Below are positions 22,227 through 64,000 of a DNA stretch of 64,000 nucleotides, piece by piece. The DNA lies in contig JAPMXV010000049.1 in the NCBI GenBank assembly GCA_026936335.1, positions 186,001-250,000 of the forward strand, in the 5' to 3' direction. The notes under the pieces are model-generated. The model was not told the DNA's origin, did no database searches, and was given only the letters and a program-made list of their open reading frames with translations. Numbering within the stretch: position 1 is the stretch's first letter; each line of letters starts with the position of its first letter. This DNA comes from Mantamonas sphyraenae STR306 (lineage: Eukaryota; Protista; CRuMs). The translations under genes were made by a program, and so were the position numbers.

Positions 22227-25200
22227 TCACAGGCTTCTTTGCACCGCCTTGGCAAAGCGCTGTGCCACTTTTTCCAGCTCCTTGAGCGAGGGCATGTCCT
22301 GAATCCATTGGGAGGCCTGTTCCTGCAAAGCGTTCCATCCCAAGTGGCAGCCAAGCAGGCTTGCGGCGAGCGCGGCGTTCGGGCAAGTTTCGCCTCCTTC
22401 CTTCACAATGTCCAGAAGCACATCGACAAAGCTGCGTCCGGCACAGGCCTCGTCCATGGCCCAAAGCGCCACCGCCATGGTCTTGAGAGCGGGTAGCGAG
22501 GACGAGGTCAGGGACACCAGCGACTTGCCACTCTCGTCGCTAGAGGACATGGCGCCGTCGAGATTCATGTGCGCATCCAAGTCCAGCTCACCCAGCGACG
22601 TTGCTGTGGCACTGCTTCGGAACTCGGACGCATGTTCACCCAAAGGCACATGCTTCTCCACAAAAGCAATGCACTGGTTGCGCAAGGCGCGCCATGCAAT
22701 GTCCGAATCTGCTGGTACACCGCGAAGCAGCAGAGACACACACATGGCCGTCATGACACCTGCCGCCACACAGCGCCCATCAGGATGGGTCAGCCGAGTC
22801 ACAGAGCTGCAGATGCGCAGTACGTCGTCTCTGTGCTGGAAGCGCATGGCGCCCACGAGAGGCGCTCGTCCAAGCGCTGCGTTGTCGTGCCATCGCTTGC
22901 CGTCACGACGCCACAGTCGCTCTGTGTCCTTTAGAGGCTCGGTTGTGAAGCGAGCACTGTTCAGCACACGCTGAAGCGATTCCGGTATGGACACCGGAGC
23001 ACCCCGGTCAAGGATGCCGTCCTCATTCCAGACCTGCAGGCGCATGGCCAGGTCGACCATGTTCATGGATCCTGGGCTGTCGATCATGGCCTGTGCAAAC
23101 ACAAGCATCTGTTCCGTCCACACAGTGTAATCTCCTGGCACCCATCGACTGCGGTGGGCGTCCTGTACAATGTCGCCCATCCGCAGCTGTTGCATTTGAG
23201 CACGCTCACCATACCGCAGCTTCACCTTGCTGGCACTCATATGCTCCGTAGCAAGCCCCACCGCATTCCCAATGGCATAGCCCAGCATCAACCCCTTGAC
23301 CCGATCCATCAGTTCAACCTCCCCGAGCCCACGCACACTCGACCGAAGAATCGGGATGGGTGTCACTGCAGGGAGTGATGAAAGCTGCAGCGACTCTTCC
23401 ACTGCATGTAACCCGAGGGCGTGTCCGACCTGGATGCAGCTATCGTGTAGTGCCTGCACGTCCAACTGTTGGTTGTCCAGAGTGTCTGCCACGACCACCA
23501 CGTCAAACAACCCCTGCAATACCTCCTGCGCATGCTTCGCCTGACGCTTGGCCGCGCCTACCAGTGACTCCATTGCTTTCTTCTTTGTGCCTGAATACCG
23601 CCTGCGAACGGCTGCCTCCATGATCTTGTCCGATTCTGCCTGCACATGCACGGTGACCACGTGCAGCGCGCGCGTATCCATCAACTTCTCGGCACCCATT
23701 ATATCCAGCTCCAGCACACCGATGCTTCCCTGCCTGGCGTCGCCCAGAGTCAGCGACGTCGTGACTGCATCTGCGCTGGTTGCCAGGGTGCTTCCTTGCA
23801 CCTTTTGCCACTCCAGACACACTCCCTGGGCGATGGTTTCTACCACCGTCTCCTCCTCTTCCTCAACAAACCACCCACTCGGGTGCTTCTTGTAGAAAGT
23901 CTCCATCTCGGCCAGCGCAATGCGTCCTTCCCACTCGTCAAAATCCGGCAGGTGCTGTGGCAGCTGACCCGTTGTGTTCCGCCAGACGGGTACAAATACT
24001 CCGGGATAGGCACGCATGAGCTCATGCACAAGCGCCGTTTTGCCCACGCAGGGTGCACCGGTGACCACCAGCACAGGGTAGGAGTCGAGCATCGTGGCAA
24101 CCTCCGTGTTTGGCGCAGGTGTGCTCACAAGCACCGCCGTATGAGACACACCCGCCGCCACGCACAATGACAATCCCCGTGTGTCGCCGTTGGCCAGCAC
24201 AGGCACGTCCCTCACCATGCGTTCTCGGAAGCCTTTGTCCAGCGAGCTCACCACCGAGGGTTCCTCAGTAAAGTTCAGCCCCCACGCAATCACATCCAGG
24301 TTTTCTGCCACCAACACGCAGTTGCGAGGTCCACAAAACACATGTTTGATCCCTGGGCGGCTGCGTGTGCCGTAGCCAAGCAACGAAAGCTCAATCTCAC
24401 GCGGCACAGCCTGCTTGTCATCCACCAAGAAAAAGCCCAGTTGGTTCACGTCATTGCACCCCCACGTGTACACATGTGGGTTCCCACGACGATCGCGTGT
24501 CAGAACCATCGTATGCTTGCTTCCACAGGCCACCTCCACCACCTCTTCGTTCCCAAACATCTGCACGAGTTGCGGCACTGCAGTCCCTTCGCCAAACTCC
24601 TCTCCCAGTCCCAGCTGTCCGTCCACGTGGCTACCAAACATGTACAATTGCCTGTCGTGCGTCACCACCGCCGTGTGATGCTCTCCACACTCCACCTGCA
24701 CCACCTGCAGCCCTTGCGAACGAAAGTGTTCGACGGGCAGGGGAAACAGGCACCGTTCTGTGTCCCCCAACCCCAGCTCTCCGTGTTCGTTGGCTCCCCA
24801 CGCATACAATGTGCCTGCTGCCGTCACTGCAAAGCTGTTGTGTGCACTGCATGCAATCGACGTCACTTCGTGGCCGTTGAGAAAGTCCAGTTGCGTCGGT
24901 GTGTGTGTTCCCTGCCCCCCTGCGTCATCTCCGCTATGCCCATCTCCCAATATGCCTGAGCCCCATGCAAACACCCGATGACACGACGTCAGAGCCATCG
25001 AGTGCGAATCCGAACATGCGCTGCGCACGAAAAAGCATCCGTCGTCTGTGTCCAGCTGCGCCAGCGACTCCTGTTGCTCTATGGCTCCTAGTCCCAGCTG
25101 GCCGTTGCGCCCGTCCCCGCAGCTGTACAGCTTGCCGTTATACCCCACGGCCAGCATGTGCATAGACGAACACGCCACATCCAGGTAGTATCCACTCACC

Positions 25201-26000
25201 AGTCCCGGCTCCTCGGCCGCCTCGCCTTTTCCATCTCCATCCATGCGTCCCACAAACGCACTGTCTCCCCATGTAACCAATACACCGACTCGATTACGCA
25301 GCTCTTTCCGCTCCTCCATCCCAAGCGGCCTTCCGTCTCCGCCTTCACTTCCCTGCGTCAAGCGTGAGTCGTTCAATCCGTCGTCCAGCTGAACCTTGAC
25401 GTGTCCGCTGTGCGTCAATTCTATGCTTCCACTTCCTCCTCCGCCTCCTTCCCCATCTCCTTCCTCTTCTGCCTCCAGCTGCCACAGATCTTGGGACTGG
25501 TGAACATCCGCCTCAACAAAGCCGTCGCCTCCGTATCCACTGCGGCCTCCAGGGGTGTGTGCCCCGCTTGGTGATGCAACCATCCCCGAGTACTCCAGCT
25601 CCCTGCTCTGGTCCATCCCTAAAGGCGTGGACGCTCCCTTTGGCGTTCCACCGTTTGCGTGCGCAGCCGTTTCCCGCGCCGAAAAGTCCAACGCGCGCAC
25701 CGGTGTTTCGCTGTCCCCAACCTTGCTCCCGGGCGTCCCAACATTTGAGACTTGGCTCCCGGGCATCTTTACCCCGCTTGCCATCGGAGTACTTCCGTTG
25801 TCTTTCAATATAATGTTCCCTTCCGGGGTACTCAGCACATGTTTGCTAATCTCGCTTCCTGGTGTCTCTTGCACTCGACTGCTGTTTGACACACTCTTTG
25901 GCGTGCCACTGTGCTCACTGTCCACCATCACCACGGACTCCTCCATCGCTACCCCCTGCTGACGCGGGGCAGCCTTTGCCTTTGATGCCCCGCAACCCAT
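22227..26000 (-). CDS. N-acylated RCC1-repeat / guanylate kinase-like / ADP-ribosylglycohydrolase-like multidomain protein
   Basis: MGCGAS start; RCC1 repeats (LYSCGDGRNGQLG, WGANEHGELG, VACGSKHT); P-loop GAPCVGKT; ARH fold motifs (DRVKGLMLGYAIGNAVG, NAALGR, LTHPDGRC, NAALAASLLG). Confidence 0.8.
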   Translation of the reverse strand: MGCGASKAKAAPRQQGVAMEESVVMVDSEHSGTPKSVSNSSRVQETPGSEISKHVLSTPEGNIILKDNGSTPMASGVKMPGSQVSNVGTPGSKVGDSETPVRALDFSARETAAHANGGTPKGASTPLGMDQSRELEYSGMVASPSGAHTPGGRSGYGGDGFVEADVHQSQDLWQLEAEEEGDGEGGGGGSGSIELTHSGHVKVQLDDGLNDSRLTQGSEGGDGRPLGMEERKELRNRVGVLVTWGDSAFVGRMDGDGKGEAAEEPGLVSGYYLDVACSSMHMLAVGYNGKLYSCGDGRNGQLGLGAIEQQESLAQLDTDDGCFFVRSACSDSHSMALTSCHRVFAWGSGILGDGHSGDDAGGQGTHTPTQLDFLNGHEVTSIACSAHNSFAVTAAGTLYAWGANEHGELGLGDTERCLFPLPVEHFRSQGLQVVQVECGEHHTAVVTHDRQLYMFGSHVDGQLGLGEEFGEGTAVPQLVQMFGNEEVVEVACGSKHTMVLTRDRRGNPHVYTWGCNDVNQLGFFLVDDKQAVPREIELSLLGYGTRSRPGIKHVFCGPRNCVLVAENLDVIAWGLNFTEEPSVVSSLDKGFRERMVRDVPVLANGDTRGLSLCVAAGVSHTAVLVSTPAPNTEVATMLDSYPVLVVTGAPCVGKTALVHELMRAYPGVFVPVWRNTTGQLPQHLPDFDEWEGRIALAEMETFYKKHPSGWFVEEEEETVVETIAQGVCLEWQKVQGSTLATSADAVTTSLTLGDARQGSIGVLELDIMGAEKLMDTRALHVVTVHVQAESDKIMEAAVRRRYSGTKKKAMESLVGAAKRQAKHAQEVLQGLFDVVVVADTLDNQQLDVQALHDSCIQVGHALGLHAVEESLQLSSLPAVTPIPILRSSVRGLGEVELMDRVKGLMLGYAIGNAVGLATEHMSASKVKLRYGERAQMQQLRMGDIVQDAHRSRWVPGDYTVWTEQMLVFAQAMIDSPGSMNMVDLAMRLQVWNEDGILDRGAPVSIPESLQRVLNSARFTTEPLKDTERLWRRDGKRWHDNAALGRAPLVGAMRFQHRDDVLRICSSVTRLTHPDGRCVAAGVMTAMCVSLLLRGVPADSDIAWRALRNQCIAFVEKHVPLGEHASEFRSSATATSLGELDLDAHMNLDGAMSSSDESGKSLVSLTSSSLPALKTMAVALWAMDEACAGRSFVDVLLDIVKEGGETCPNAALAASLLGCHLGWNALQEQASQWIQDMPSLKELEKVAQRFAKAVQRSL

Positions 26001-26160
26001 TGCTTTTTTGGCTCGACTCGTGCAGTGCCAATCGCCAATGATTTCGACCTTGTGTGTCAAACGGACCTCTCATCCAATCCTATCACTCAACGCAACTCGG
26101 CGTTTTCATCGTCTGCATGACTCAGCCGCCGGCCGAGCAAAGCAAACGAATTTTTCCAGG

Positions 26161-27881: not shown

Positions 27882-28772
27882 TCAGTTGCTGTTCTTGAGG
27901 TTGTTGGCCACAAAGTTCCAGTCGACGACCTTCCACCAGTTGGCAAGGTACTCGGGGCGGCGGTTCTGGTAGTCCAGATAGTACGCGTGCTCCCACACGT
28001 CCACAGTCAGCAACGGAGTTTGGTTGTTGACCTGCGGGTTGCCTGCGTTGAACGTGTTGGCCAGCTCCAGCTTGCCCTGCTCGTTCTTCACCAGCCAGGT
28101 CCAACCCGAGCCGAACAGCGCTGTGGCGTTGGCCGTAAACTCGTCCTTGAACGAGTCAAAGTCGCCAAACGACTCGTTGATGGCCTTGAGCAGCTCCTCG
28201 TCCTGGGGAGTGTTGTTGTCCACGTCCGTGTTCTCGCTCATGCAGTGCCAGTAGAACGTGTGGTTGACAATCTGCGCCGTCTGGTTGAACAGGCCAGCCT
28301 TGGCCGTGTCCTCCGCCGCAATGAGCATCACCTCCTCCACAGGCTTCCCCTCCAGATCCGAACCCTCCAGAAGGTTGTTTGCGTTGTTCACGTACGTCTG
28401 TGGGTGTCACCGTGTCCAGTGTTTGCGTTTTGTGTCAGCCGGAAAAGCTCCGTTCCCGCCCTCTGGCGGAAAATGCCCTTCCCGCACCTCACCTGATGGT
28501 GCTTGTTGTAGTGGTAGTCCAGCACGTTGGGCGACAGTGCAGGCTTCAGACCATCCTGGATGTAGGAGATCTCAGGCAGAGTGTACTTGCTTGCACTCTG
28601 TGTTCCGTCGTCGTCCGTGTCAGTTGCGTTGGGCATGGGCCACTTTCGTACCTGCAAGCACGTCCACATGGCTCTCTCTACACCTCACCTGGGTTGCAGA
28701 CACACTTGCAGCTACGCTGGCAGACGTCTTGGATGCAGACTTGATGACAGAAGAGCGAGAAACAATCGACAT
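27882..28772 (-). CDS. Iron superoxide dismutase with putative mitochondrial presequence; introns 28598-28688, 28398-28492
   Basis: HYNKHHQTYV, FNQTAQIVNHTFYW (Fe-type AQ), FGSGWTW, DVWEHAYYLDYQNRR; Ser/Ala/Lys-rich acid-free exon 1. Confidence 0.9.
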
Positions 28773-28791
28773 TTTTGTTGGAAGAGTTGGC

Positions 28792-31700
28792 TCAGACGCG
28801 GCTGCGTTTCTCGTCGTGCGTCCCTCCATTGGTGACCGTAGACCCATCCTCATCATTGGCATCCTCAGTCTCCATCACATCTCGCTTGCGCTTGCGTTGT
28901 CGGCGTTCTCTGACGAGCTCGTGGACAGCGTCCGCTCGTGCTCCCAGCTCCTTGAGGAAGATCTTGATCACATCCCTGCCTTTAACCACATTCTGCACTC
29001 GAATGCGTTCGTTCTCCACGTGGGCATGGTCCGACGCCTGTACCAAGGGCAAGTGCAGGGCAGGGGCTTGCAGAATGGTTTCCAGGAATGGGATCGTGGG
29101 GATGGTGCCGCCTTCTCGCACCAGCATGGGTTCCGTTTCCCATACCTGCTTGATGGCTTCTTTGGCGCACTGGAACGGCACGTTTTCGTGGTCGGCCAGC
29201 CACCAGTTGCCCGAGCGCAGCACCTCCACATGCAATTCGTTTCCGGTCTGCTGCGCTTCAAACTGCCTTTGCAGGTGCTTGATGACGATGTCTTCGACGT
29301 CTTCCACAACCTGGTCTGGGACGATGCGTACACTCAATGTGGCCTCGGCGACGTTGGAAATGACTGACCATGCGTGGTTGTGGCTTGTGCGCACACTGTG
29401 GATCGAAAGGCTCGGTTGCCGCCACCGCTGCTTCAGGATTTCCACCTTGTCGTCTTGCTGACCACGCAGCTTGTTTACCGCAATCTCTTTACGGTACTGC
29501 TCCACGTCAAACTCGAGGTTGTCGTACAAGGGACCCTCCGTTTCTGCATCCCAAGGCCGCACCTGGTCGTAGAATCCAGGCACGTGGATGTTGCCCTCTG
29601 CGTCCACCAACTTGCTCAGCAACTGCATGAGGGCGTGCATGGGCTCGTACACGACGCCTCCGTGGACACCAGAGTGCATGTTTTCCCCGGGTCCCTTCAC
29701 CGTCACGCGCATTGTGATGATGCCTCTCATGCCGTAGCAAAGGCACGGTGTGTGGTCACCAATCCAGGTTGCGTTGGACAATACGATCACATCTGTGTCC
29801 TCTAGGAACTCCTTGTTCCGTTCCACCGCGTCCTGCAACCCCTGGCTGTCGCATTCTTCCTCACCTTCGATCAAGAAGTTGATGTTCACGGGCAAACTCT
29901 CTTCCTCCTGCAGCTCATGGGCAGCCATCAGCATCATCATGATGGGGCCCTTGTTGTCGCTTGTTCCACGGCCGTAGAAGTATCCGTTTCTTCCCATCAT
30001 GCTCCACGGATCCTGATCCCATCCATCATCGGCAGAGGCCTCCACCACGTCGTAGTGGCCGTAGAACGTCACAGTGGGCTTCTCCTCCGGATGTTTAGCC
30101 ATGATCTTGGAAAAAATCAACGGATTGGCACCTTCCTTGCCCACCACCAACTTTGAGGAGAAACCGAGCTGATCCAACACCGCAGTGAGCATGCTGGCCA
30201 TCGCGTACGACTCGTCCTTGTAGCGCGGGTTGCCGCTGACACTGGGGATGGCCACCGCACGGTTGAGGAGAGCAAACAGGAGCTCGTTGCCATGGAGACG
30301 TGAGATCATCGCTTCCACACTGGCGTTTGCGCTCACAAGCAGTTTGCGTTTGCTTCGCGGCGTGCCTCCAGCACTTGTGTCGTGCGAGCTGTCTCCGTCC
30401 TCGGACGCTGCTGCGACCATGTCATCCTGGTCCATTGCGTCGGAGATGTCGTCGTCCACCGTGCCCGTGGCGACCGGAAACATGCACACAGTGCCATCGA
30501 GGGAGCCTGTGAAAAAGAACGAACCACGGACCACGAGGCTGGTGACGGCGTCGTCGTGCGCCTGAAAGCTGTACATACACTCCAGATTGCTGAGGGACCA
30601 CTGTCGTACGGTGCCGTCGCGGCTTGCAGAGAACAGGTACTCGGGAGTGGAGGCAAGGGCGAGGACGTGTGCCTTGTGCGCAAGGCGGCGCTTGCAGAAC
30701 ATGGGCTCCTGAGTGGCGTCCCACACACGCACACTGTTGTCTGTGGAGCCAGAAAACAGCAGCTCGTGTGTCGCGTTGTAATGGAGCGCCATGATGTTGC
30801 CCTGGTGTCCCACGAGCCCTTGTGCACATTGCATCGAACGCGCGTTCCACACGCGGATGGACATGTCCCCCGACCCGGACACAACGTACTCGGGAGTCGA
30901 GGCAAGGCTGTACACGTAGCCGTGATGGTGGAACTTGTTGTGCCGCCGGCGGTTCACGCGCTCCATGTCGATTTGTGTTTCGTCGCCACGGAGCTCGTCC
31001 ATGATGCCCAAGAGGTCCAGCGAATAGATGGTCATGTCCTGTGCACCAACAAAGAGGGTGCGGGAGTCGTCGCCCACAGAAAGGCTGTAGATGCCCGAAA
31101 CGGGGCATCGGATGGTCAGCCGCAGCTGGAAGGACGACAGGTCCCAAAGGCGAATGGTTGCATCGCTGGAAGAGCTCAACAGCCAGCACACCCCGTCCTG
31201 GGAAAAGGTGAGCAGACACAGGACGGAGCGAGTATGGCCCTTGAGTGCAGCCTTGAGTTCCAAGGATTCAATGTCGTGCACGTTGATGGTCGAATCTTGC
31301 GAGCCGCTGAGAAGGTAGTGAGCAGAGGCCGCAAGTGCAAGCACGGGGCCTGAGTGCTCTGTGAACCGATGCTTGTCCGTAGCTTGCATCGCCATCATGT
31401 CCTCCTCAGCGTTGCTGGCGACCATGAGCATGGACATGGAGGACGATTTTGTCAGGCGGCCTTGCCCTTCCGAGGTGAAATCGGAATTGGTGGACAATGA
31501 TGATGATGATGAACTGCGATGAGTAGGGTTGTGGACGTCTCTTAGACGCTGAGCTTGGACATGTTTGAGGGCACGAATGATGTCCTGGCGGGTCCCGCGG
31601 CAGCGCGAGTTCATGGTTTCCGTGACGACGCCGGCATAGTCTGTCGAGTTGTGGGATGTCCTGAGGGCGGAAGTAGCAGCGGCAGCGGATTTGGTTGAGG

Positions 31701-32992
31701 AAGATGAAGACGAGGATGATGATGACTGCTGGGAAAACGCCGGCGGACCGGAGAAGCAGGTCGCGTTGTGGGACGTGGCAGCCGCTGAGGGGCCGACGTC
31801 GATGTGGTGGGGTTTGGAAGTAAGCTGTTCGTAGGGGTAGAGCAGGATACTTGTGTCGCTGGTGATGACAAGAAAGGTGTTGCGAGGCACGGGGCACCAG
31901 TCGGTCCGGTCCCAAAGGGGCTCTGAGGCAACGATGACGAGCTGTTCTCCCTTGTCTCCGTGAACCACGTTGTAGGAATCGACCTGGTTGGATGATGCTT
32001 GAGCTTTGCTGTTGCGCAGAGAGGGCTCGACGTCGCTCTGGTCGTACAGGTTTTGGTTGATGAGGGAGCGGTTGGATGTGAGCTTGTCGGCTGCGCTGAT
32101 GATATCACTTCCAGAGCTGTAATACAAGCTGACGGGTTTGTGTTTCGGGTCGTTGGAGGAGATGTAGCGCGTGCAGACGACGGTTTCTCCGTCAGTGACG
32201 GCAAAGTTGAGCAGCATGGGCTTCTCGAGATTGCATTCGACAGCCCACTCATTGAGCTGCTCGATGACGCGCACAAGATACTGCAACAGCAGTTCGGGTG
32301 ACAGTTCGTCCGAGGCAAAGTCGAAATTGTCTGGAAACTGGCTAAGGAACAAGGCGAAGCAGTACTCGGAATCGGTTGTGCCCTGCAAGTGAGCAATTCC
32401 GCGAGGACAGGTGTCAGCAGGGCGAGAAACACACGAAAGAGACTACAACGAGTCGGGAGAGGGCAGATGGCAGGCACGGCGAGTGGGCAGATGGCCATGC
32501 AGGGCGAACACGAGGGTTCTGGAAATCGCGGGAGCTCTCCGGACGTACAGTGACGGCACTGAAGGCAACCGGGTTGAGGGCCAGAATAAGCTTGCGCTTG
32601 AACCCACTTTGCACAAAGGTGGGAATGTCACCATTGTGCATGAACATGTAACGGCCAAAGGCCCATGGGTGGCAGTTTGCATCGCTGGCAGCCGAGCTGG
32701 TTCCGGCGCGCACATGGGCAAAGAGCATGGGGGAGAAGGTCTTTGCGGCAATGCGCTGGAGGTTGATGGAGTTCCACGCAGGTGTTAGGGAGGTAAACAC
32801 GCACGGGGTCGAGTCTCCATCGTCCTGGGGTGTGTACCAGCCCACGCCAAAACCTTCGCTGTGTGGGATCCCTCGGCCGGAAACCAGCTCCTGATTGCCG
32901 TATGACTGCTTCAAGATGCTATGTGTCGGACGTGTGATCAAATCTGCCATGCAGATGCTATGATCGCCCGCATACACCAAGAAACGGCACAT
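28792..32992 (-). CDS. Fusion of class II glutamine amidotransferase (Dug3-like) + WD40 + M20 peptidase (Dug2-like); intron 32383-32548
   Basis: MCRF N-terminal nucleophile, GFGVGWY, FAHVRA, NCHP, MHNG, GTTDSE; then WD40 repeats; then YGHYDVV, GRGTSDNKGP, EGEEE, HSGVHGG, AHVENE. GTTDSE through M20 lies in one 1198-aa open frame. Confidence 0.88.
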
Positions 32993-33038
32993 GAGAAAGG
33001 GATGAGAGGTGTTTTGTTGGAATGCAGGGCGCGCTTTG

Positions 33039-34269
33039 TCACTGTGATGATGATGATGATGATGATGACGAGGAAGAAGACCCTTGCCACTCGTTCTTCA
33101 ACGAGTATTTGCCATGGAGGGGACCGGTCTGGTGATACTCTGTGATCTCGCCCATGACCTCCTTGAGAAACACCTCGGGCTGCTGGACGACGTCGTTGAT
33201 CTCTTTCAGCGACAGGGCCTCGGCTCCTTCAAACACGGAAAAGATCTTGGATTTGAGCAATTCGGGATCGATGCGAACTCGTGTCTTGGAGTAGTCGCGC
33301 TTCGGCGCATCTTTGACCGCTGCCTTCTGCGCTCCGTCGTCGTGATGTGTGCCAATTGGGGATAGCGGGAAGCGGGAGCGACGTGAGGAACACGGGGATG
33401 TGAACCATGGACATGTGTGTGTGTGAGAGAGAGACAAAGCCACAATTGCTTGGCCGTGAGGGCACCGAGGGGAATGCTCGAGCAGCGCCCCTCTTGGCGA
33501 GCAAGCTGAGGCGCTGCATGTATGTCTGTGGGTGCGTGTGTGTGCATGTGCGTGCAGATTTGGGCCCACTTACGTAGCGTTCCATCCTTTGCTGTGCGCT
33601 TTGGATGCGTGACTGGCGCTCCTCTTCCTCGGTGAGCACTGTGAGTTTGTTTGCGTGTCGCTGGCGTTGGGCAGCCTCGTGTCGTTCCCGCAGAATGGCC
33701 TTGTACTCGTCGGTACGACTGGGCACACCGTCCCAGCGCTGTGAAATACGTCCAATGGCAGACATTTGGCCCCCGCGTTCTTTCAACACCTTCATGGGCC
33801 CGTGCTTTGCGCGAACCTTTTTCAGATCAAAGTGCCGAGCGAGCTTCTTTCCGTCTGCGTTTGCCAGACCCTCGTCCATTTCCACAGTGATGACGGGGTC
33901 TACACCCGGCGTTTGCGCTTGGGTCACCCGCACGATGCCAATCTGATCTCCGTGTTGTGCATGTGCCAGCTGCTTCATAAAAAACGTGGGCATTTTGACC
34001 AGCCACACGCGCGAGTTGTCTCGTTCGACGTCCTTGAGATGGTCCGAGTAGTGGCTAACTTCCTCGCCATCAAACACAAGCACCTGTCCCTTGCCAGGGT
34101 GGTTCAACACGGACAGGCCCCTCTTCCCGTTCTCGTTGACGCGATCTTCCGTTTCAACCTCCTCCTGCGTGTCTTTCTGTCCATTGTCCTCCACATCCAT
34201 CGAGTCACCGGACACAGATTCGTCCACTTCCGCCTTGGCTTTGGACTTTCGCTTCTTTTTCGATGGCAT
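33039..34269 (-). CDS. GTF2F2: Transcription initiation factor IIF beta subunit (RAP30); intron ~33327-33573
   Basis: VWLVKMP N-terminal motif; C-terminal winged helix IFSVFE..LKEI..QPEVFLKEVM.EI..GKYSLKNEW. Confidence 0.85.
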
Positions 34270-34328
34270 GGCGATTGCGCTGGGCAAACCCGCGCGACGC
34301 GGACGTGTGCTCTGCAACACGATGCATC

Positions 34329-53886: not shown

Positions 53887-56800
53887 TTAGTTGTTCGTGG
53901 ATGAACCATCTTGACCGTTGTGGCTGCTGGAGCTGGAGGAAGACGAGCTGGTGGAGCTGGTGGAGCTGGCACGCTTTCTTCCCAACGCAAGGGACGCAAG
54001 TTGCTTGACCATGTCCGACTTTTTGCTGGTGAGAAGCTCCACCTGTAGCTCAAGGTCGTTCACGCGTGCCGAAAGGGATTCGTTCTCCGCCTCCAGTTCC
54101 GACACACGTGTGGATTGCTCGCGCTTCTGTGATCGCAGCTGGGAAGACAGCTTTTGGGCAAGCGCAAGCTTCTTCTCCAACGCAGCAATGGCCTTGCTCG
54201 AGTCGGACTGGACCAGGCCTTCGTTCGCAAGAGACGCCTTCTGAAGGGCATCCATCTCCATCTCGTGGGTGACTCGCAGATCCTCCAGCGCCTGCTCCTT
54301 GGCGGCAAGCATTGCTTGTTCCTGTGCAACCAATGCTTCTTCTCGCTCCCGGTCCTTCTCCGTTCGTACCTGCTCCAGCCTGTGGCTCATCTCCTCTGCA
54401 AGGCCATCTTCCTCCTTCTTCCGCTCCAACGCCGCTCGTGCCACTTGTGCCACCAGCGCCTTCTTCTCCTCCTGTGCCTCGTCAATCTCCTCCTGCAGCT
54501 CATCCACATCCTCCTGCAACCCATCACGCTCCTCTTCCACACTTGCCAGCTGCTTCTCCACTTCGCTCTTCTGCTGCTTCACCTCCCCCAGCATCTTCTG
54601 CAACAAGCTCATTCGCTTCTCCATACTGGCCACTTCCTTGCCACAAGACTCCACAGCCACCTTCAACTCGGCGTTCTCATCTTCCAGCTGACTGCGCGTC
54701 GTGCGCAGCAGACGTTCTGTGAGCTCCAACTTTTCCAGGGCCCCCACGCGGTCAGCCTCTGCCTTTTTGAGCAGCTGAGCGTTGTGAGCCAGCCGCTCGT
54801 CCAGTGTTTTGATCTCGGAGAGCAGCCTGCGGTTGTCTGCTTGCAGGACAAGGAGATGCTGGTGAGACTCCAGGGCCTTGTCGTGCTGTTCCTTCAGCGC
54901 AGTCAATGCATCCTCATGTGACTCATCCTTGACAACGAGCGCTTGCGCATGTTGCTCCTGCAGTTCTGCCACAGCCTTGTCATGCTCTTCCTTCAGCTCA
55001 GACATGGCCTTGTCATGCTCTTCCTCCAGCTCAGTCAGTGCGTCCTCATGCGACTCATCCTTGACAACAAGCGCTTGCGCATGCTGCTCCTTCAGTTCTG
55101 CCACAGTCTTGTCATGCTCTTCTTTCAGCTCAGTCAGTGCATCCTCATGCGACTTATCCTTGACAACGAGCGCTTGTGCATGCTGTTCCTTCAGTTCTGC
55201 CACAGTCTTGTCATGCTGTTCCTTCAGCTCAGACATGGCCTTGTCATGCTCTTCTTTCAGCTCAGTCAGTGCATCCTCATGCGACTCATCCTTGACAACA
55301 AGCGCTTGCGCATGCTGCTCCTTCAGTTCTGCCACAGTCTTGTCATGCTCTTCTTTCAGCTCAGTCAGTGCATCCTCATGCGACTCATCCTTGACAACGA
55401 GCGCTTGCGCATGTTGCTCCTGCAGTTCTGCCACAGTCTTGTCATGCTGTTCCTTCAGCTCAGTCAGTGCGTCCTCTAGCGACTCATCCTTGACAGCGAG
55501 CGCTTGCGCATGTTGCTTCTGCAGTTCTGCCACAGTCTTGTCATGCTCTTCCTTCAGCTCAGTCAATGCATCCTCATGCGACTCATCCTTGACAGCGAGC
55601 GCATGTGCATGCTGCTCCTTCAGTTCTGCCACAGTCTTGTCATGCTCTTCCTTCAGCTCAGTCAGTGCATCCTCATGCGACTCATCCTTGACAACAAGCG
55701 CTTGCGCATGCTGCTCCTTCAGTTCTGCCACAGCCTTGTCATGCTCTTCTTTCAGCTCAGTCAATGCATCCTCATGCGACTCATCCTTGACAACAAGCGC
55801 TTGCGCATGCTGCTCCTTCAGTTGAGCCACAGTCTTGTCATGCTCTTCCTTCAGCTCAGTCAGTGCGTCCTCTAGCGACTCATCCTTGACAACAAGCGCT
55901 TGCGCATGTTGCTCCTTCAGTTCTGCCACAGCCTTGTCATGCTCTTCCTTCAGCTCAGTCAGTGCATCCTCATGCGACTCATCCTTGACAACAAGCGCTT
56001 GCGCATGCTGCTCCTTCAGTTCTGCCACAGTCTTGTCATGCTCTTCTTTCAGCTCAGTCAGTGCATCCTCATGCGACTCATCCTTGACAACAAGCGCTTG
56101 CGCATGCTGCTCCTTCAGTTCTGCCACAGTCTTGTCATGCTCTTCTTTCAGCTCAGTCAATGCATCCTCTTGCGACTCATCCTTGACAACAAGCGCTTGC
56201 GCATGCTGCTCCTTCAGTTGAGCCACAGTCTTGTCATGCTCTTCTTTCAGCTCAGTCAGTGCATCCTCATGCGACTCATCCTTGACAACAAGCGCTTGCG
56301 CATGCTGCTCCTTCAGTTCTGCCACAGTCTTGTCATGCTCTTCTTTCAGCTCAGTCAGTGCATCCTCATGCGACTCATCCTTGACAACAAGCGCTTGCGC
56401 ATGCTGCTCCTTCAGTTCTGCCACAGTCTTGTCATGCTCTTCTTTCAGCTCAGTCAATGCATCCTCATGCGACTCATCCTTGACAACAAGCGCTTGCGCA
56501 TGCTGCTCCTTCAGTTGAGCCACAGTCTTGTCATGCTCTTCCTTCAGCTCAGTCAGTGCGTCCTCTAGCGACTCATCCTTGACAACAAGCGCTTGCGCAT
56601 GCTGCTCCTTCAGTTCTGCCACAGCCTTGTCATGCTCTTCTTTCAGCTCAGTCAATGCATCCTCATGCGACTTATCCTTGACAACAAGCGCTTGCGCATG
56701 CTGCTCCTTCAGTTCTGCCACAGTCTTGTCATGCTCTTCCTTCAGCTCAGTCAGTGCGTCCTCTTGCGACTCATCCTTGACAACAAGCGCTTGCGCATGT

Positions 56801-59800
56801 TGCTCCTTCAGTTCTGCCACAGTCTTGTCATGCTCTTCCTTCAGCTCAGACATGGCCTTGTCATGCTCTTCCTCCAGCTCAGTCAATGCATCCTCATGCG
56901 ACTTATCCTTGACAACAAGCGCTTGCGCATGCTGCTCCTTCAGTTCTGCCACAGCCTTGTCATGCTCTTCCTTCAGCTCAGTCAGTGCATCCTCATGCGA
57001 CTCATCCTTGACAACAAGCGCCTGTGCATGCTGTTCCTGCAGTTCTGCCACAGCCTTGTCATGCTGCCCCTTCAGTTCAACCACCACTGTGTCGTGCTCC
57101 TTCTCCAGCCCAGTCACCACTACCTCGTGCTCTGCCTTCATCGCAGCCAGTGCCTCCTTCATCTGCGTACGCTGCTCCCCACGTTCCCTTTCAAACTCTT
57201 CTCGCTCTTTCTGCACCGCCTCATCAAGCGCAGCCTTTCTCTCCTCCTCCATCTGCGCCCTCAAAGCGGCCAACGCCTCCTCCTTCTCCGTTTCCTTCAG
57301 CTGCACTGCCCCAGCCCACTTGCGACGCGACCCAGCCAGCTGCATCACCATCACCGCTTGTTTCTTCGCCGCCTCTCGTCGCCGCTCTCGCTCATCCCGA
57401 CCATGGCCATCCACGCCATCATCCGTTCTCGACTCTGTGTGTGCCCCGCCTTCCTCGTGGTCCACTTCTGCCTCCACATAGGCCCGACGTACACTGCCCG
57501 TGTGCTTTTGCGCTCGCGCCATCCACACATCCTCACTGCCACCGTTACCAGTACCACCACCAGCGCCGGTATCGCTACCCACGTCGTCACCGCCATTGCC
57601 CCAGCCCACAGTGTTCACCTCCTCCACACCCTCTCTGTACACGGCGCCCAGTCGTCCATCCATCATCTCCGCCTCCAAGTGGTGGGCCATATCTGTCCCC
57701 GTCAGCTCTTGGGCCCTCGCACACACGACACAGCTGTCGACGTCGTGCCTCAGCGGGTTCTCTGCACGCTCCTGTGCCAGCAGTGCCTCGCAATGGTCAC
57801 GCGCAGCAGCCAACGCGACCAAGTGCGCCGCGTGCGCAAGCTCCAATTCCAACGCCGTCTGCGACGCCATACGACGCTCCTCAGCCACTGCCTCTGCTGT
57901 CCGCTCTTGCAGTGCCAATGCCCCAGCCAGCCATTGCTGCTGGGTGTCCCATGCAGCCCACAGCTCTCGACGTTGGCACTGTGCACGCTCCTGCACATCA
58001 ACAATCGCGTCCATTCCTTCGGACGACAGTGTGTGACGCACCCCGCCGACGTTGTCTGCAATCGACACAACGTCGAGTGTGCGACGGTGATCAGCTTCCA
58101 GACGGCTCCGCAGTGCCGCCAGTGCCTGGTCGTGTTCAGCACGAGCTGCTTCCAGGGTGGCTTGTGCAGCCCGTCCCAACGAGGATTGTTGCTCATCCAG
58201 CGCCTCTTGCTTCTCCCTCTCTAGCTGCTGGGATTGGGATTGCAGAGCAACCTGGATTTCTTCACTTAGCTCCAACTTCTGTTGCGCGAGTGCCTGCTCC
58301 TTGGCGGCAAGCATTGCTTGTTCCTGTGCAACCAATGCTTCTTCTCGCTCCCGGTCCTTCTCCGTTCGTACCTGCTCCAGCCTGTGGCTCATCTCCTCTG
58401 CAAGGCCATCTTCCTCCTTCTTCCGCTCCAACGCCGCTCGTGCCACTTGTGCCACCAGCGCCTTCTTCTCCTCCTGTGCCTCGTCAATCTCCTCCTGCAG
58501 CTCATCCACATCCTCCTGCAACCCATCACGCTCCTCTTCCACACTTGCTAGCTGCTTCTCCACTTCGCTCTTCTGCTGCTTCACCTCCCCCAGCATCTTC
58601 TGCAACAAGCTCATTCGCTTCTCCATACTGGCCACTTCCTTGCCACAAGACTCCACAGCCACCTTCAACTCGGCGTTCTCATCTTCCAGCTGACTGCGCG
58701 TCGTGCGCAGCAGACGTTCTGTGAGCTCCAACTTTTCCAGGGCCCCCACGCGGTCAGCCTCTGCCTTTTTGAGCAGCTGAGCGTTGTGAGCCAGCCGCTC
58801 GTCCAGTGTTTTGATCTCGGAGAGCAGCCTGCGGTTGTCTGCTTGCAGGACAAGGAGATGCTGGTGAGACTCCAGGGCCTTGTCGTGCTGTTCCTTCAGC
58901 GCAGTCAATGCATCCTCATGTGACTCATCCTTGACAACGAGCGCTTGCGCATGTTGCTCCTGCAGTTCTGCCACAGCCTTGTCATGCTCTTCCTTCAGCT
59001 CAGACATGGCCTTGTCATGCTCTTCCTCCAGCTCAGTCAGTGCGTCCTCATGCGACTCATCCTTGACAACAAGCGCTTGCGCATGCTGCTCCTGCAGTTC
59101 TGCCACAGCCTTGTCATGCCGCTCACTCAGCTCCGTCAGTGCATCCTCATGCGACTTATCCTTGACAACAAGCGCTTGCGCATGCTGTTCCTTCAGTTCT
59201 GCCACAGCCTTGTCATGCTGTTCCTTCAGCTCAGACATGGCCTTGTCATGCTCTTCCTTCAGCTCAGTCAATGCATCCTCATGCGACTCATCCTTGAGAA
59301 CGAGTGCATGTGCATGCTGCTCCTTCAGTTCTGCCATAGCCTTGTCATGCTGCTCACTCAGCTCAGTCAGTGCATCCTCATGCGACTTATCCTTGACAAC
59401 AAGCTCTTGCGCATGCTGCTCCTTCAGTTCTGCCACAGTCTTGTCATGCTCTTCCTTCAGCTCAGTCAATGCATCCTCATGCGACTCATCCTTGACAACG
59501 AGCGCATGCGCATGCTGCTCCTTCAGCTCTTCCACAGCGTTGCCATGCTCTTCCTTCAGCCCAGACATGGCCTTGTCATGCTCTTCCTCCAGCTCAGTCA
59601 GTGCGTCCTCATGCGACTCATCCTTGACAACAAGCGCTTGCGCATGCTGCTCCTTCAGTTCTGCCACAGCCTTGTCATGCTGTTCCTTCAGCTCAGTCAG
59701 TGCATCCTCATGCGACCCATCCTTGACAACGAGTGCATGTGCATGCTGCTCCTTCAGTTCTGCCACAGCCTTGTCATGCTGCTCACTCAGCTCAGTCAGT

Positions 59801-62800
59801 GCATCCTCATGCGACTTATCCTTGACAACAAGCGCTTGCGCATGCTGCTCCTTCAGTTCTGCCACAGTCTTGTCATGCTCTTCCTTCAGCTCAGTCAATG
59901 CATCCTCATGCGACTTATCCTTGACAACAAGCGCTTGCGCATGCTGCTCCTTCAGTTCTGCCACAGTCTTGTCATGCTCTTCCTTCAGCTCAGTCAATGC
60001 TTCCTCATGCGACTTATCCTTGACAACGAGCGCTTGTGCATGCTGTTCCTTCAGTTCTGCCACAGCCTTGCCATGCTCTTCCTTCAGCGCAGACATGGCC
60101 TTGTCATGCTCTTCCTCCAGCTCAGTCAGTGCGTCCTCATGCGACTCATCCTTGACAATGAGCGCATGTGCATGCTGTCCCTTCAGTTCTGCCACAGCCT
60201 TGTCGTACTACTGCTCCTTCAGCGCAGTCAGTGCATCCTCATGCGACCCATCCTTGACAACGAGCGCTTGTGCATGCTGTTCCTTCAGTTCTGCCACAGC
60301 CTTGCCATGCTCTTCCTTCAGCCCAGACATGGCCTTGTCATGCTCTTCCTTCAGCGCAGTCAGTGCATCCTCATGCGACCCATCCTTGACAACAAGCGCT
60401 TGCGCATGTTGCTCCTTCACTTCTGCCACAGCCTTGCCATGCTCTTCCTTCAGCGCAGACATGGCCTTGTCATGCTCTTCCTCCAGCTCAGTCAGTGCGT
60501 CCTCATGCGACTCATCCTTGACAATGAGCGCATGTGCATGCTGTCCCTTCAGTTCTGCCACAGCCTTGTCGTACTGCTCCTTCAGCGCAGTCAGTGCATC
60601 CTCATGCGACCCATCCTTGACAACGAGCGCTTGTGCATGCTGTTCCTTCAGTTCTGCCACAGCCTTGCCATGCTCTTCCTTCAGCCCAGACATGGCCTTG
60701 TCATGCTCTTCCTTCAGCGCAGTCAGTGCATCCTCATGCGACCCATCCTTGACAACAAGCGCTTGCGCATGTTGCTCCTTCACTTCTGCCACAGCCTTGC
60801 CATGCTCTTCCTTCAGCGCAGACATGGCCTTGTCATGCTCTTCCTCCAGCTCAGTCAGTGCGTCCTCATGCGACTCATCCTTGACAATGAGCGCATGTGC
60901 ATGCTGTCCCTTCAGTTCTGCCACAGCCTTGTCGTACTGCTCCTTCAGCGCAGTCAGTGCATCCTCATGCGACCCATCCTTGACAACGAGCGCTTGTGCA
61001 TGCTGTTCCTTCAGTTCTGCCACAGCCTTGCCATGCTCTTCCTTCAGCCCAGACATGGCCTTGTCATGCTCTTCCTTCAGCGCAGTCAGTGCATCCTCAT
61101 GCGACCCATCCTTGACAACAAGCGCTTGCGCATGTTGCTCCTTCACTTCTGCCACAGCCTTGCCATGCTCTTCCTTCAGCGCAGACATGGCCTTGTCATG
61201 CTCTTCCTCCAGCTCAGTCAGTGCGTCCTCATGCGACTCATCCTTGACAATGAGCGCATGTGCATGCTGTCCCTTCAGTTCTGCCACAGCCTTGTCGTAC
61301 TGCTCCTTCAGCGCAGTCAGTGCATCCTCATGCGACCCATCCTTGACAACGAGCGCTTGTGCATGCTGTTCCTTCAGTTCTGCCACAGCCTTGCCATGCT
61401 CTTCCTTCAGCCCAGACATGGCCTTGTCATGCTCTTCCTTCAGCGCAGTCAGTGCATCCTCATGCGACCCATCCTTGACAACAAGCGCTTGCGCATGTTG
61501 CTCCTTCACTTCTGCCACAGCCTTGCCATGCTCTTCCTTCAGCCCAGACATGGCCTTGTCATGCTCTTCCTTCAGCTCAGTCAGTGCATCCTCATGCGAC
61601 TCATCCTTGACAACGAGCGCTTGCGCATGTTGCTCCTGCAGTTCTGCCACAGTCTTGTCATGCTGTTCCTTCAGCTCAGACATGGCCTTGTCATGCTCTT
61701 CTTTCAGCTCAGTCAATGCATCCTCATGCGACTTATCCTTGACAACAAGCGCTTGCGCATGCTGCTCCTTCAGTTCTGCCACAGTCTTGTCATGCTCTTC
61801 CTTCAGCTCAGTCAGTGCGTCCTCTTGCGACTCATCCTTGACAACAAGCGCTTGCGCATGTTGCTCCTTCAGTTCTGCCACAGTCTTGTCATGCTCTTCC
61901 TTCAGCTCAGACATGGCCTTGTCATGCTCTTCCTCCAGCTCAGTCAATGCATCCTCATGCGACTCATCCTTGACAACAAGCGCTTGCGCATGCTGCTCCT
62001 TCAGTTCTGCCACAGTCTTGTCATGCTCTTCCTTCAGCTCAGTCAATGCATCCTCATGCGACTCATCCTTGACAACGAGCGCATGCGCATGCTGCTCCTT
62101 CAGCTCTTCCACAGCGTTGCCATGCTCTTCCTTCAGCCCAGACATGGCCTTGTCATGCTCTTCCTCCAGCTCAGTCAGTGCGTCCTCATGCGACTCATCC
62201 TTGACAACAAGCGCTTGCGCATGCTGCTCCTTCAGTTCTGCCACAGCCTTGTCATGCTGTTCCTTCAGCTCAGTCAGTGCATCCTCATGCGACCCATCCT
62301 TGACAACGAGTGCATGTGCATGCTGCTCCTTCAGTTCTGCCACAGCCTTGTCATGCTGCTCACTCAGCTCAGTCAGTGCATCCTCATGCGACTTATCCTT
62401 GACAACAAGCGCTTGCGCATGCTGCTCCTTCAGTTCTGCCACAGTCTTGTCATGCTCTTCCTTCAGCTCAGTCAATGCATCCTCATGCGACTTATCCTTG
62501 ACAACAAGCGCTTGCGCATGCTGCTCCTTCAGTTCTGCCACAGTCTTGTCATGCTCTTCCTTCAGCTCAGTCAATGCTTCCTCATGCGACTTATCCTTGA
62601 CAACGAGCGCTTGTGCATGCTGTTCCTTCAGTTCTGCCACAGCCTTGCCATGCTCTTCCTTCAGCGCAGACATGGCCTTGTCATGCTCTTCCTCCAGCTC
62701 AGTCAGTGCGTCCTCATGCGACTCATCCTTGACAATGAGCGCATGTGCATGCTGTCCCTTCAGTTCTGCCACAGCCTTGTCGTACTGCTCCTTCAGCGCA

Positions 62801-64000
62801 GTCAGTGCATCCTCATGCGACCCATCCTTGACAACGAGCGCTTGTGCATGCTGTTCCTTCAGTTCTGCCACAGCCTTGCCATGCTCTTCCTTCAGCCCAG
62901 ACATGGCCTTGTCATGCTCTTCCTTCAGCGCAGTCAGTGCATCCTCATGCGACCCATCCTTGACAACAAGCGCTTGTGCATGCTGTTCCTTCAGTTCTGC
63001 CACAGCCTTGCCATGCTCTTCCTTCAGCGCAGACATGGCCTTGTCATGCTCTTCCTCCAGCTCAGTCAGTGCGTCCTCATGCGACTCATCCTTGACAATG
63101 AGCGCATGTGCATGCTGTCCCTTCAGTTCTGCCACAGCCTTGTCGTACTGCTCCTTCAGCGCAGTCAGTGCATCCTCATGCGACCCATCCTTGACAACGA
63201 GCGCTTGTGCATGCTGTTCCTTCAGTTCTGCCACAGCCTTGCCATGCTCTTCCTTCAGCCCAGACATGGCCTTGTCATGCTCTTCCTTCAGCGCAGTCAG
63301 TGCATCCTCATGCGACCCATCCTTGACAACAAGCGCTTGCGCATGTTGCTCCTTCACTTCTGCCACAGCCTTGCCATGCTCTTCCTTCAGCGCAGACATG
63401 GCCTTGTCATGCTCTTCCTCCAGCTCAGTCAGTGCGTCCTCATGCGACTCATCCTTGACAATGAGCGCATGTGCATGCTGTCCCTTCAGTTCTGCCACAG
63501 CCTTGTCGTACTGCTCCTTCAGCGCAGTCAGTGCATCCTCATGCGACCCATCCTTGACAACGAGCGCTTGTGCATGCTGTTCCTTCAGTTCTGCCACAGC
63601 CTTGCCATGCTCTTCCTTCAGCCCAGACATGGCCTTGTCATGCTCTTCCTTCAGCGCAGTCAGTGCATCCTCATGCGACCCATCCTTGACAACAAGCGCT
63701 TGCGCATGTTGCTCCTTCACTTCTGCCACAGCCTTGCCATGCTCTTCCTTCAGCGCAGACATGGCCTTGTCATGCTCTTCCTCCAGCTCAGTCAGTGCGT
63801 CCTCATGCGACTCATCCTTGACAATGAGCGCATGTGCATGCTGTCCCTTCAGTTCTGCCACAGCCTTGTCGTACTGCTCCTTCAGCGCAGTCAGTGCATC
63901 CTCATGCGACCCATCCTTGACAACGAGCGCTTGTGCATGCTGTTCCTTCAGTTCTGCCACAGCCTTGCCATGCTCTTCCTTCAGCCCAGACATGGCCTTG
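53887..64000 (-). CDS. Giant His/Glu/Lys-rich coiled-coil repeat protein (>3300 codons, 5' end outside window) with one in-frame TAG at 60208-60210
   Basis: ORFs 60208-63993 and 53887-60195 are in the same frame and built from the same 11-aa units. Confidence 0.8.
54880..57070 (-). repeat. 33/99-bp coding tandem repeat array
   Basis: HAQALVVKDES-HEDALTELKEE-HDKTVAELKEQ repeated. Confidence 0.95.
58880..64000 (-). repeat. 33/99/132-bp coding tandem repeat array with 363-bp higher-order unit
   Basis: The Tyr-variant marker gtcgtactg recurs at 363-bp spacing (gtac at 60571, 60934, 61297). Confidence 0.95.

Follow-up and report, generated by a model that had tools for sequence, protein, structure and literature searches.

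In Saccharomyces cerevisiae, the (Dug2p-Dug3p)2 glutathione hydrolase is built from two gene products. A gene of the protist Mantamonas sphyraenae raises the question of whether a single polypeptide can correspond to this complex outside fungi, and how unusual such a polypeptide would be. The gene lies in a 64-kb stretch of genomic DNA, called the window below. Its predicted product carries the three domains of the yeast complex (a class-II Ntn GATase with Cys2, a WD40 propeller and an M20A domain) on one chain, in the order GATase-linker-WD40-M20. The catalytic motifs and an Asn at the position of CNDP2 Asp195 are also common to both systems. Fungal Dug2 and Dug3 are ~35-45% identical to the Mantamonas protein, which has in addition a Ser-rich linker of 137 aa and ends in a basic tail. 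The DUG route has been termed "fungus-specific", or a route of "yeasts and fungi" (PMC9012958; bioRxiv 10.1101/2024.07.21.604522). We consider it likely that the Mantamonas protein is a homologue of the yeast hydrolase in single-chain form, and that the fused form is probably ancestral and the two-gene form of fungi probably arose from it by fission.

Structure of the fused gene

The gene (32992..32549 + 32382..28792, on the minus strand, as are all features given below) is predicted to have two exons and one 166-nt GT-AG phase-0 intron (GTACGT...TTGCAG, 32383..32548). Exon 1 (32549..32992) encodes 148 amino acids, namely the Met-Cys2 start and the N-terminal half of a class-II (Ntn) GATase, with the motifs MCRF, GFGVGWY, HVRA, NCHP and HNG. 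Exon 2 (28792..32382) is a single stop-free frame of 1196 codons (32382..28795) followed by the stop codon TGA (28794..28792). The protein length of ~1344 amino acids is the sum of the two pieces (148 + 1196), which were searched, aligned and folded separately. With the intron left in place, the exon 1 frame meets a stop after 44 further codons, and in alignments the junction between exon 1 and exon 2 agrees with homologues, with zero residues gained or lost. From these sequence features we infer that the intron is spliced and that the fusion is expressed as a single transcript.

Within exon 2, the C-terminal half of the GATase domain (31813..32382; motifs TDSE, LNFAVTDG and ASEPL) is followed by a low-complexity linker of ~137 amino acids, 23% of them Ser (31375..31785), a WD40 beta-propeller of ~327 amino acids (30394..31374) and an M20A metallopeptidase-fold domain of the CNDP/Dug1/Dug2 type with its dimerisation lid (28939..30306). 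The remaining 48 amino acids past the M20 domain (28795..28938) form a tail whose basic cluster, RRQRKRKR, resembles a nuclear localisation signal. Profile searches and alignments recovered every feature that a first-pass annotation of this DNA had listed from its letters (Cys2 in MCRF, the Ser-rich linker, WD40, M20 and SNATW). That annotation had also argued that the fusion holds irrespective of the intron call, which is borne out by the one stop-free frame that carries the GATase C half together with WD40 and M20.

The locus might instead yield two products, as in fungi, if the intron were retained or if an internal promoter gave rise to a separate WD40-M20 protein. The Ser-rich linker exceeds the length seen in most homologues, and could in principle conceal an internal start. 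However, the GATase C half, which an active enzyme requires, is in the same frame as WD40 and M20, exon 1 alone would encode a truncated GATase, and orthologues are found as single transcripts or single ORFs. We therefore regard two products as very improbable, and treat the gene as encoding one chain. A search of the organism's own genome found each half (GATase and WD40-M20) to be single-copy, and an Rfam scan of the whole window returned zero matches.

The GATase domain

The MCRF start (32992..32981) places Cys directly after the initiator Met, and an MCR start is common to all 21 fusions examined, six fungal Dug3 proteins and 18 bacterial relatives. The catalytic and oxyanion motifs HVRA, NCHP, HNG, TDSE and SEPL are complete across the two exon pieces. 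Exon 1 matches Pfam GATase_4 (E 8.4e-8) and PDB entry 3mdn (E 2.4e-21). The C half matches GATase_4 weakly (E 0.012), and a phmmer search of it against PDB returned chance MAD2 matches and nothing else; it is assigned to the domain because it aligns with homologues.

Among NCBIfam models, exon 1 is matched best by EgtC (TIGR03442, E 2.6e-27), an amidohydrolase of ergothioneine biosynthesis. Identity with EgtC was rejected, as the match reaches 95.8 bits against a curated equivalog cut-off of 218.65, a score that is in part length-limited because it comes from exon 1 alone. Bacterial standalone class-II GATases of ~285 amino acids (of the PDB 3mdn type, often auto-annotated as EgtC) and true EgtC (PDB 4zfj) share the fold and motifs of the Mantamonas domain, and these standalone proteins are 40-43% identical to a proxy query, the GATase domain taken from the Thecamonas fusion. 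Unlike the Mantamonas protein, they lack the WD40 and M20 domains, and they fall on the opposite side of the GATase tree. In this quick tree, eukaryotic fusions and fungal Dug3 are separate from the bacterial 285-aa GATases (SH-aLRT 90), and fungal Dug3 forms one clade (100). The two Mantamonas exon pieces are both placed with the eukaryotic (Dug3) sequences, among which their position lacks resolution and the exon 1 branch is long.

By analogy with yeast, the putative function of this domain is hydrolysis of the gamma-glutamyl bond of glutathione. After removal of the initiator Met, Cys2 would attack glutathione, or a related gamma-glutamyl peptide, at its gamma-glutamyl amide bond, with Cys-Gly freed first and glutamate second. 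With the same fold and chemistry, the physiological substrate might be a different gamma-glutamyl compound (a gamma-Glu dipeptide, for instance), or a gamma-glutamyl intermediate in a step like that of EgtC. This would fit with EgtC as the best NCBIfam match, with uncharacterised bacterial 285-aa GATases as the closest standalone relatives by identity, and with the cleavage of gamma-Glu-Met by yeast Dug2/Dug3 (PMC7617739). However, the EgtC score is far under its cut-off, the domain groups with Dug3, and only the Dug system has a WD40-M20 partner, so a substrate other than glutathione seems unlikely. Glutathione itself, the substrate suggested by the yeast enzyme, is the candidate we prefer.

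The WD40 propeller and its predicted contact with the GATase lobe

WD40 repeats are strongly matched (PF00400, E 2.4e-38); Pfam scores five of them, and the span has room for seven blades. A model of the complex between the two GATase exon pieces and the WD40 domain scored 0.86 (best of three controls, 0.00), a mark attained by 51 of 78 solved complexes and 2 of 108 mismatched pairs in a calibration set that differs from this case of three chains from a eukaryotic protein. At least 92% of contacts are shared between runs, and the pLDDT of the partner is at least 86. The residues predicted to contact the propeller are 138-146, 160-163 and 176-183 of the exon 2 piece, all in the GATase C half. 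The model supports docking of the GATase C-terminal lobe on the WD40 face, although its high score may reflect family likeness instead of binding. The predicted contact agrees with the Dug3-Dug2 interaction reported in yeast. Thus, a contact that in yeast joins two separate proteins would here be made within one chain, with the lobe resting on the top face of the propeller.

The M20 domain

The last domain matches Peptidase_M20 (PF01546, E 1.4e-23), M20_dimer (PF07687, E 1.7e-9) and mouse CNDP2 (E 4.5e-83). In common with Dug1p and CNDP2 (PDB 2zof, 4g1p), it has the M20A fold with a lid, and retains the His, the bridging Asp, the Glu-Glu pair, the second His and the lid His, among them four of five metal ligands. 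The conservation of these residues goes beyond the needs of a pure scaffold.

The exception is the sequence LSNATW (29764..29781), which aligns with ISDNYW of CNDP2 and places an Asn at the position of the metal ligand Asp195. Of 18 named fusions and 14 Dug2-type (WD40+M20-only) proteins compared, nearly all have the same Asn, and the one true CNDP-like sequence in the comparison has Asp. By alignment, Asn at this position marks the Dug2 clade as a whole, in line with the first-pass annotation, which had read SNATW as consistent with a Dug2-like scaffold. Identity with the Cys-Gly dipeptidases Dug1 and CNDP2 was considered and rejected: the five-ligand set (His, Asp, Glu, Asp, His) is incomplete, its fourth member being Asn. 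With its attached WD40 and GATase domains, the protein also differs from Dug1p and CNDP2 in architecture, and it belongs to the Dug2 branch rather than that of Dug1. In the M20 tree, fungal Dug2 forms one clade (99) that is placed among the fusions. The Mantamonas branches are long and without resolution in both trees. These trees agree with the earlier proposal that a protist outside fungi has a Dug3-Dug2 homologue on one chain, as both halves group with their fungal counterparts.

Yeast Dug2p reportedly has no peptidase activity; its WD40 domain is said to bind Dug3p, and its M20 domain to dimerise. If the yeast protein is a guide, the Mantamonas M20 domain, with Asn at one metal-ligand position as in Dug2-type proteins, would likewise lack peptidase activity and would chiefly dimerise the enzyme. 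The Glu-Glu pair, which the Mantamonas protein keeps, is lost in many fused orthologues (red algae, streptophyte algae, Entosiphon and Namystynia), several algal fusions among them, and catalysis at the M20 site is therefore dispensable for the family.

Glutathione metabolism and the fate of Cys-Gly

The genome encodes a glutathione synthetase, and so the organism makes glutathione. It also encodes two GGT genes and one ChaC, and the label "GGT-independent", which the first-pass annotation gave to the enzyme, does not hold for this organism. An M17 leucyl aminopeptidase is present. A genome search with a true CNDP-type query detected no free Dug1/CNDP2 gene: its top match is the M20 domain of the fusion itself, followed by one with an E-value of 2e-9 and 24% identity. 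The enzyme had further been called self-contained, which could apply at most to the first step (glutathione to Glu and Cys-Gly), and not to the later cleavage of Cys-Gly. That breakdown would be completed by another peptidase.

One alternative is that the M20 domain is active or binds substrate, such that one metal holds the Cys-Gly end of glutathione, or the site cleaves Cys-Gly, and one chain carries out both steps. Retention of four metal ligands, the catalytic Glu and the lid His is compatible with this idea, as is the lack of a detected CNDP2/Dug1-type gene. On the other hand, the Asp-to-Asn change is common to fungal Dug2, which reportedly has no peptidase activity, the Glu-Glu pair is dispensed with in the orthologues named above, and the M17 aminopeptidase is available for Cys-Gly. 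Thus, an active or substrate-binding M20 domain is quite unlikely. A more general proposal also strikes us as unlikely: that the M20 domain is not a dead scaffold, that its one-metal site holds or cleaves Cys-Gly, and that a possibly bifunctional fused form was ancestral, from which the three-gene DUG system of fungi arose by fission and subfunctionalisation. Were the M20 domain functional, one chain would perform the whole of glutathione breakdown in Mantamonas. A dimerising domain that leaves Cys-Gly to another peptidase is the role that we favour. A natural single-chain version would be a handy object for studies of structure and mechanism, given that the yeast form needs two subunits.

Distribution of the fused architecture

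The first-pass annotation itself named widespread occurrence of the fusion as a finding that would count against it, and the fusion is not unusual. Of the 150 best 50%-identity representatives, at least 25 show the same architecture, starting from residue 1 (MCR...). Fused proteins are found in NCBI, UniProt and EukProt, in at least 10 major eukaryotic lineages. They occur in ichthyosporeans (Amoebidium), choanoflagellates (Salpingoeca), apusomonads (Thecamonas), amoebozoans (Soliformovum), green algae (Picochlorum, Volvox), streptophyte algae (Mesostigma, Chlorokybus), red algae (Porphyridium, Cyanidium, Cyanidioschyzon), euglenozoans (Entosiphon and three diplonemids), chromerids (Chromera) and dinoflagellates (Symbiodinium). 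Several of these orthologues are complete ORFs on single assembled transcripts, and three are single uninterrupted genomic ORFs.

Some database copies carry informative annotations. The Cyanidioschyzon merolae protein (XP_005539305.1) is annotated as [quoted passage not shown], that of Porphyridium purpureum (KAA8496877.1) as "putative di- and tripeptidase DUG2", and the Symbiodinium copy as "DUG2"; Thecamonas trahens XP_013754763.1 is a further fused GATase-WD40-M20 protein. These four are identical to the Mantamonas protein in domain order, MCR start and Asn signature. Database fusions differ from it in sequence, with at most ~45% identity to its M20 domain, and the nearest is that of Amoebidium. 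No other fused copy from the CRuMs lineage, to which Mantamonas belongs, was among the matches found.

Our literature searches turned up no described Dug3-Dug2 fusion. The nearest report is a paper on Euglena that names one transcript contig as an orthologue of "GSH degradosome proteins" (PMC6351624). Within this fused family, which is under-described, the Mantamonas copy is unremarkable, and by itself carries little weight, as the family is already in databases from many protists and algae. The presence of the fused form across Holozoa, Apusomonadida, Amoebozoa, CRuMs, Archaeplastida, Discoba and Alveolata suggests an ancient cytosolic glutathione hydrolase, probably of LECA age, that was lost in animals and land plants and split in two by fungi. 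This broader pattern of an ancestral fusion and fission in fungi is modestly interesting, and merits a short comparative study.

The neighbouring Fe-SOD gene

Downstream of the fusion gene, a 19-nt spacer (28773..28791) separates its TGA from the first possible Fe-SOD start codon, an ATG at 28772. For the Fe-SOD to begin at this ATG, a 37-nt GT-AG intron (28688..28652) must be removed; without this splice, the first in-frame Fe-SOD ATG is at 28669, 122 nt past the stop. Thus, the distance of 19 bp given in the first-pass annotation is correct for the ATG, and as a distance to the Fe-SOD start it is conditional on splicing. The suggestion of a redox mini-cluster was rejected, as the arrangement is absent from four other genomes (Thecamonas, Picochlorum, Porphyridium and C. 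merolae): in none of these is a SOD gene found within 6 kb of the fusion.

As a separate observation on gene spacing, neighbouring genes in the Mantamonas genome are routinely tens of bases apart.

Gene model and domain architecture

The fused gene for homologues of yeast Dug3 and Dug2 lies on the minus strand, in a region of 55-61 % GC. ORF reading of the window finds an ORF of 1198 codons (28792..32388) and, upstream of it, one of 192 codons that begins with MCRF at 32992. Exon 1 has 148 codons (32992..32549), with a GTACGT donor directly after codon 148. It is followed by a predicted phase-0 intron of 166 nt, which ends in a TTGCAG acceptor at 32383, and by an exon 2 of 1196 stop-free codons (32382..28795). 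The predicted product has 1344 residues (148 + 1196, the sum of the exon lengths), and the two exons were treated as separate pieces in all searches, alignments, trees and folds.

Exon 1 resembles the Pfam profile GATase_4 (E 8.4e-8), the class-II GATase of PDB 3mdn (E 2.4e-21) and the EgtC equivalog model (E 2.6e-27), the last with 95.8 bits, which is under the 218.65 cut-off. Exon 2 encodes the remaining GATase fold, a 137-residue linker with 23 % Ser, WD40 repeats (PF00400, E 2.4e-38), and an M20 domain (PF01546, E 1.4e-23) with its dimerisation lid (PF07687, E 1.7e-9). Mouse and human CNDP2, CNDP1 and yeast Dug1 are nearest to the M20 part (E 4.5e-83 to 1.2e-72). Alignment with relatives finds all six GATase motifs intact (MCRF, HVRA, NCHP, HNG, TDSE and SEPL). 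In the M20 domain, YGHYDV supplies the first His, SDNKGP the bridging Asp and DHAHVENE the last His; the Glu-Glu pair and the lid His are likewise retained, and LSNATW places Asn at the position of the CNDP2 ligand Asp195. Profile matches, motif alignment and frame reading thus confirm the fused GATase-linker-WD40-M20 protein with SNATW that the first-pass annotation had described.

A 48-residue tail beyond the M20 domain (28795-28938, minus strand) contains a basic cluster, RRQRKRKR, that resembles a nuclear localisation signal. This tail is outside the stretch aligned with homologues, and M20 matches stop near ORF residue 1150.

Distribution of the fusion

To take a census of similar proteins, we searched 1.84 billion representatives exhaustively with exon 2 as the HMMER query, and then ran a local phmmer search with the two GATase pieces. 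Species names were obtained from database look-ups and a word-indexed search. At least 25 of the best 150 representatives at 50 % identity have a GATase domain from residue 1 ahead of WD40 and M20. The best match, from the ichthyosporean Amoebidium parasiticum, covers 96 % of exon 2. Other fusions are found in choanoflagellates (Salpingoeca kvevrii), apusomonads (Thecamonas trahens), Amoebozoa (Soliformovum irregulare), green algae (Picochlorum and Volvox reticuliferus), streptophyte algae (Mesostigma and Chlorokybus), red algae (two Porphyridium species, Cyanidium and Cyanidioschyzon merolae), Euglenozoa (Entosiphon and the diplonemids Lacrimia, Namystynia and Diplonema) and alveolates (Chromera velia and Symbiodinium). 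Several are complete ORFs, each on one assembled transcript, and in Picochlorum, Porphyridium and C. merolae the entire protein is a single uninterrupted genomic ORF. Fungal matches, of 830-1000 residues, have only WD40 and M20.

The architecture is therefore not unusual, and the window gene is a further member of a kind already visible in databases. The C. merolae protein is named [quoted passage not shown], that of Porphyridium "putative di- and tripeptidase DUG2" and that of Symbiodinium "DUG2". The host was rightly described as a protist outside fungi, M. sphyraenae being a free-living CRuMs flagellate whose published FALCON assembly has 25.06 Mb in 78 contigs, with 59.19 % GC (PMC10492846).

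Evolutionary affinity and origin

Both domain trees are effectively unrooted and poorly resolved at the base. In a quick IQ-TREE analysis of 44 M20 sequences, rooted on the single true CNDP-like sequence, all 14 Dug2 proteins of fungi group together as a single clade (SH-aLRT 99) amid the fused forms. The window domain is a long, basal branch of unsettled placement, with Amoebidium as its nearest relative (45 % identity). In the GATase tree (52 sequences), fusions, fungal Dug3 and both window pieces stand opposite bacterial GATases of 285 aa (branch support 90), and fungal Dug3 is again one clade (support 100). As far as single-domain trees tell, then, the two halves of the window protein belong to Dug3 and Dug2, and the grouping suggested in the first-pass annotation is recovered within that resolution.

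A fused ancestral enzyme with fission in fungi fits these sequences, though it is not proven: almost every supergroup has the fusion, and the split form falls in a single fungal clade in each tree. Repeated fusion or gene transfer is possible instead, and the weakly resolved base of the trees leaves room for either. As a comparative result, the pattern across supergroups is real, if modest. The DUG pathway has been termed "fungus-specific" (PMC9012958) and attributed to "yeasts and fungi" (bioRxiv 10.1101/2024.07.21.604522), and a Euglena study names one transcript contig, without comment, as an orthologue of "GSH degradosome proteins" (PMC6351624). Our literature search, with most subscription journals outside it, found no paper describing a Dug3-Dug2 fusion, which is weak evidence.

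Two EukProt proteins have only one half each: P0007 ("Rmarinus", 858 aa), a non-fungal eukaryotic WD40-M20 protein without GATase, and P0297 (GFYU01009510, 295 aa, complete ORF), a free eukaryotic Dug3-like GATase. Both branch near Thecamonas and the window gene, and may represent either truncated transcripts or a further split that took place independently of the fungal one.

Mechanism and the M20 site

Kaur, Ganguli and Bachhawat reportedly found in 2012 that yeast Dug3p is a GATase requiring Cys2, and that Dug2p, which is said to have no peptidase activity, uses its WD40 domain to bind Dug3p and its M20 domain to dimerise. The resulting (Dug2p-Dug3p)2 complex is said to hydrolyse GSH, yielding Glu and Cys-Gly, the dipeptide that Dug1p goes on to cleave. 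In outline, PMC9804317 and PMC7617739 agree with this scheme.

Our three-chain model comprised exon 1, the GATase portion of exon 2 and the WD40 domain. The complex scored 0.86 (best of three controls, 0.00). Of 78 solved complexes 51 reach this mark, as do 2 of 108 mismatched pairs; the job is unlike the tool's calibration, and the pass may reflect family likeness. Model runs share at least 92 % of contacts, with partner pLDDT of at least 86. Predicted contacts involve the final GATase strands (exon-2 residues 138-146, 160-163 and 176-183) and the full length of the WD40 domain, as expected if the top face of the propeller interacts. Given this docking model and the yeast scheme, the most likely mechanism is that of yeast, with the Dug3-Dug2 subunit contact made inside one chain. 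We infer both the GSH substrate and the dimer for the window protein.

SNATW was correctly read as Dug2-like: in the alignment, the Asn of SNxxW is common to nearly all fusions and fungal Dug2-type proteins, and the CNDP-like sequence has Asp. To regard the window M20 domain as a mere scaffold would be a further inference from yeast. The catalytic, metal-binding Glu-Glu pair is retained in fungi, Mantamonas, Thecamonas, Salpingoeca, Picochlorum, Volvox and Chromera. It is replaced in the red algae Porphyridium and C. merolae, and in Mesostigma, Chlorokybus, Entosiphon, Namystynia, Symbiodinium and Amoebidium. Its loss in many fused orthologues shows that catalysis at the M20 site is dispensable in the family, and, judged from the alignment, its decay is lineage-specific.

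Glutathione genes in the same genome

Searches of the M. sphyraenae assembly (25,061,354 bases, 78 contigs) found one GATase of the Dug3 kind, which is the window gene, and one CNDP-type M20 domain, which is within the same fusion. A true CNDP-like query found nothing better than E 2e-9 elsewhere in this genome, and homology searches of it found no free Dug1/CNDP2-type dipeptidase gene. The description of the enzyme as self-contained thus holds for the first step only, unless the M20 domain is active. The genome also has two gamma-glutamyl transpeptidase (GGT) genes, and one each for ChaC, M17 leucyl aminopeptidase and eukaryotic GSH synthetase. GGT-independence, also claimed earlier, is therefore a property of the enzyme's chemistry but not of the organism. 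Other M20 genes in the assembly (labelled C33, C11, C72 and C34) belong to distant subfamilies.

Neighbouring genes

Upstream, in the interval 32993-33041, the stop codon of a minus-strand TFIIF-beta gene (with ORF pieces at 33039..33569 and 33229..34320) precedes the ATG of the fusion gene by 46 nt. At the other end of the fusion gene, its TGA (28794..28792) is followed after 19 nt by an ATG at 28772, with Fe-SOD domains farther downstream. The distance agrees with the first-pass annotation, but this ATG is the SOD start only if a 37-nt GT-AG intron (28688..28652, minus strand) is removed, which would give a Ser/Ala/Lys-rich presequence. The other candidate start is an in-frame ATG at 28669 (minus strand), with an acidic N-terminus. 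A second intron, of ~90 nt, follows KHHQ. Hardly any intergenic DNA separates the three co-directional genes; either their promoters and UTRs must overlap coding sequence or they share transcripts. Because the 46-nt and 19-nt spacers make tight packing the rule here, and no SOD occurs within 6 kb of the fusion gene in any of four other genomes (Thecamonas, Picochlorum, Porphyridium and C. merolae), we reject the suggested redox mini-cluster.

Elsewhere in the window, a 1277-aa ORF (22227-26060, minus strand) has an unusual combination of RCC1-like propeller, guanylate-kinase-like and ADP-ribosylglycohydrolase domains. Pfam matches to two adjacent, very long ORFs of 2102 aa (53887-60195) and 1261 aa (60208-63993), both on the minus strand, are all fragmentary and zero-stretch (DUF4108, PucR, Sds3 and FBF1). 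The two ORFs probably encode coiled-coil or low-complexity proteins, or belong to a single gene with an intron between them.
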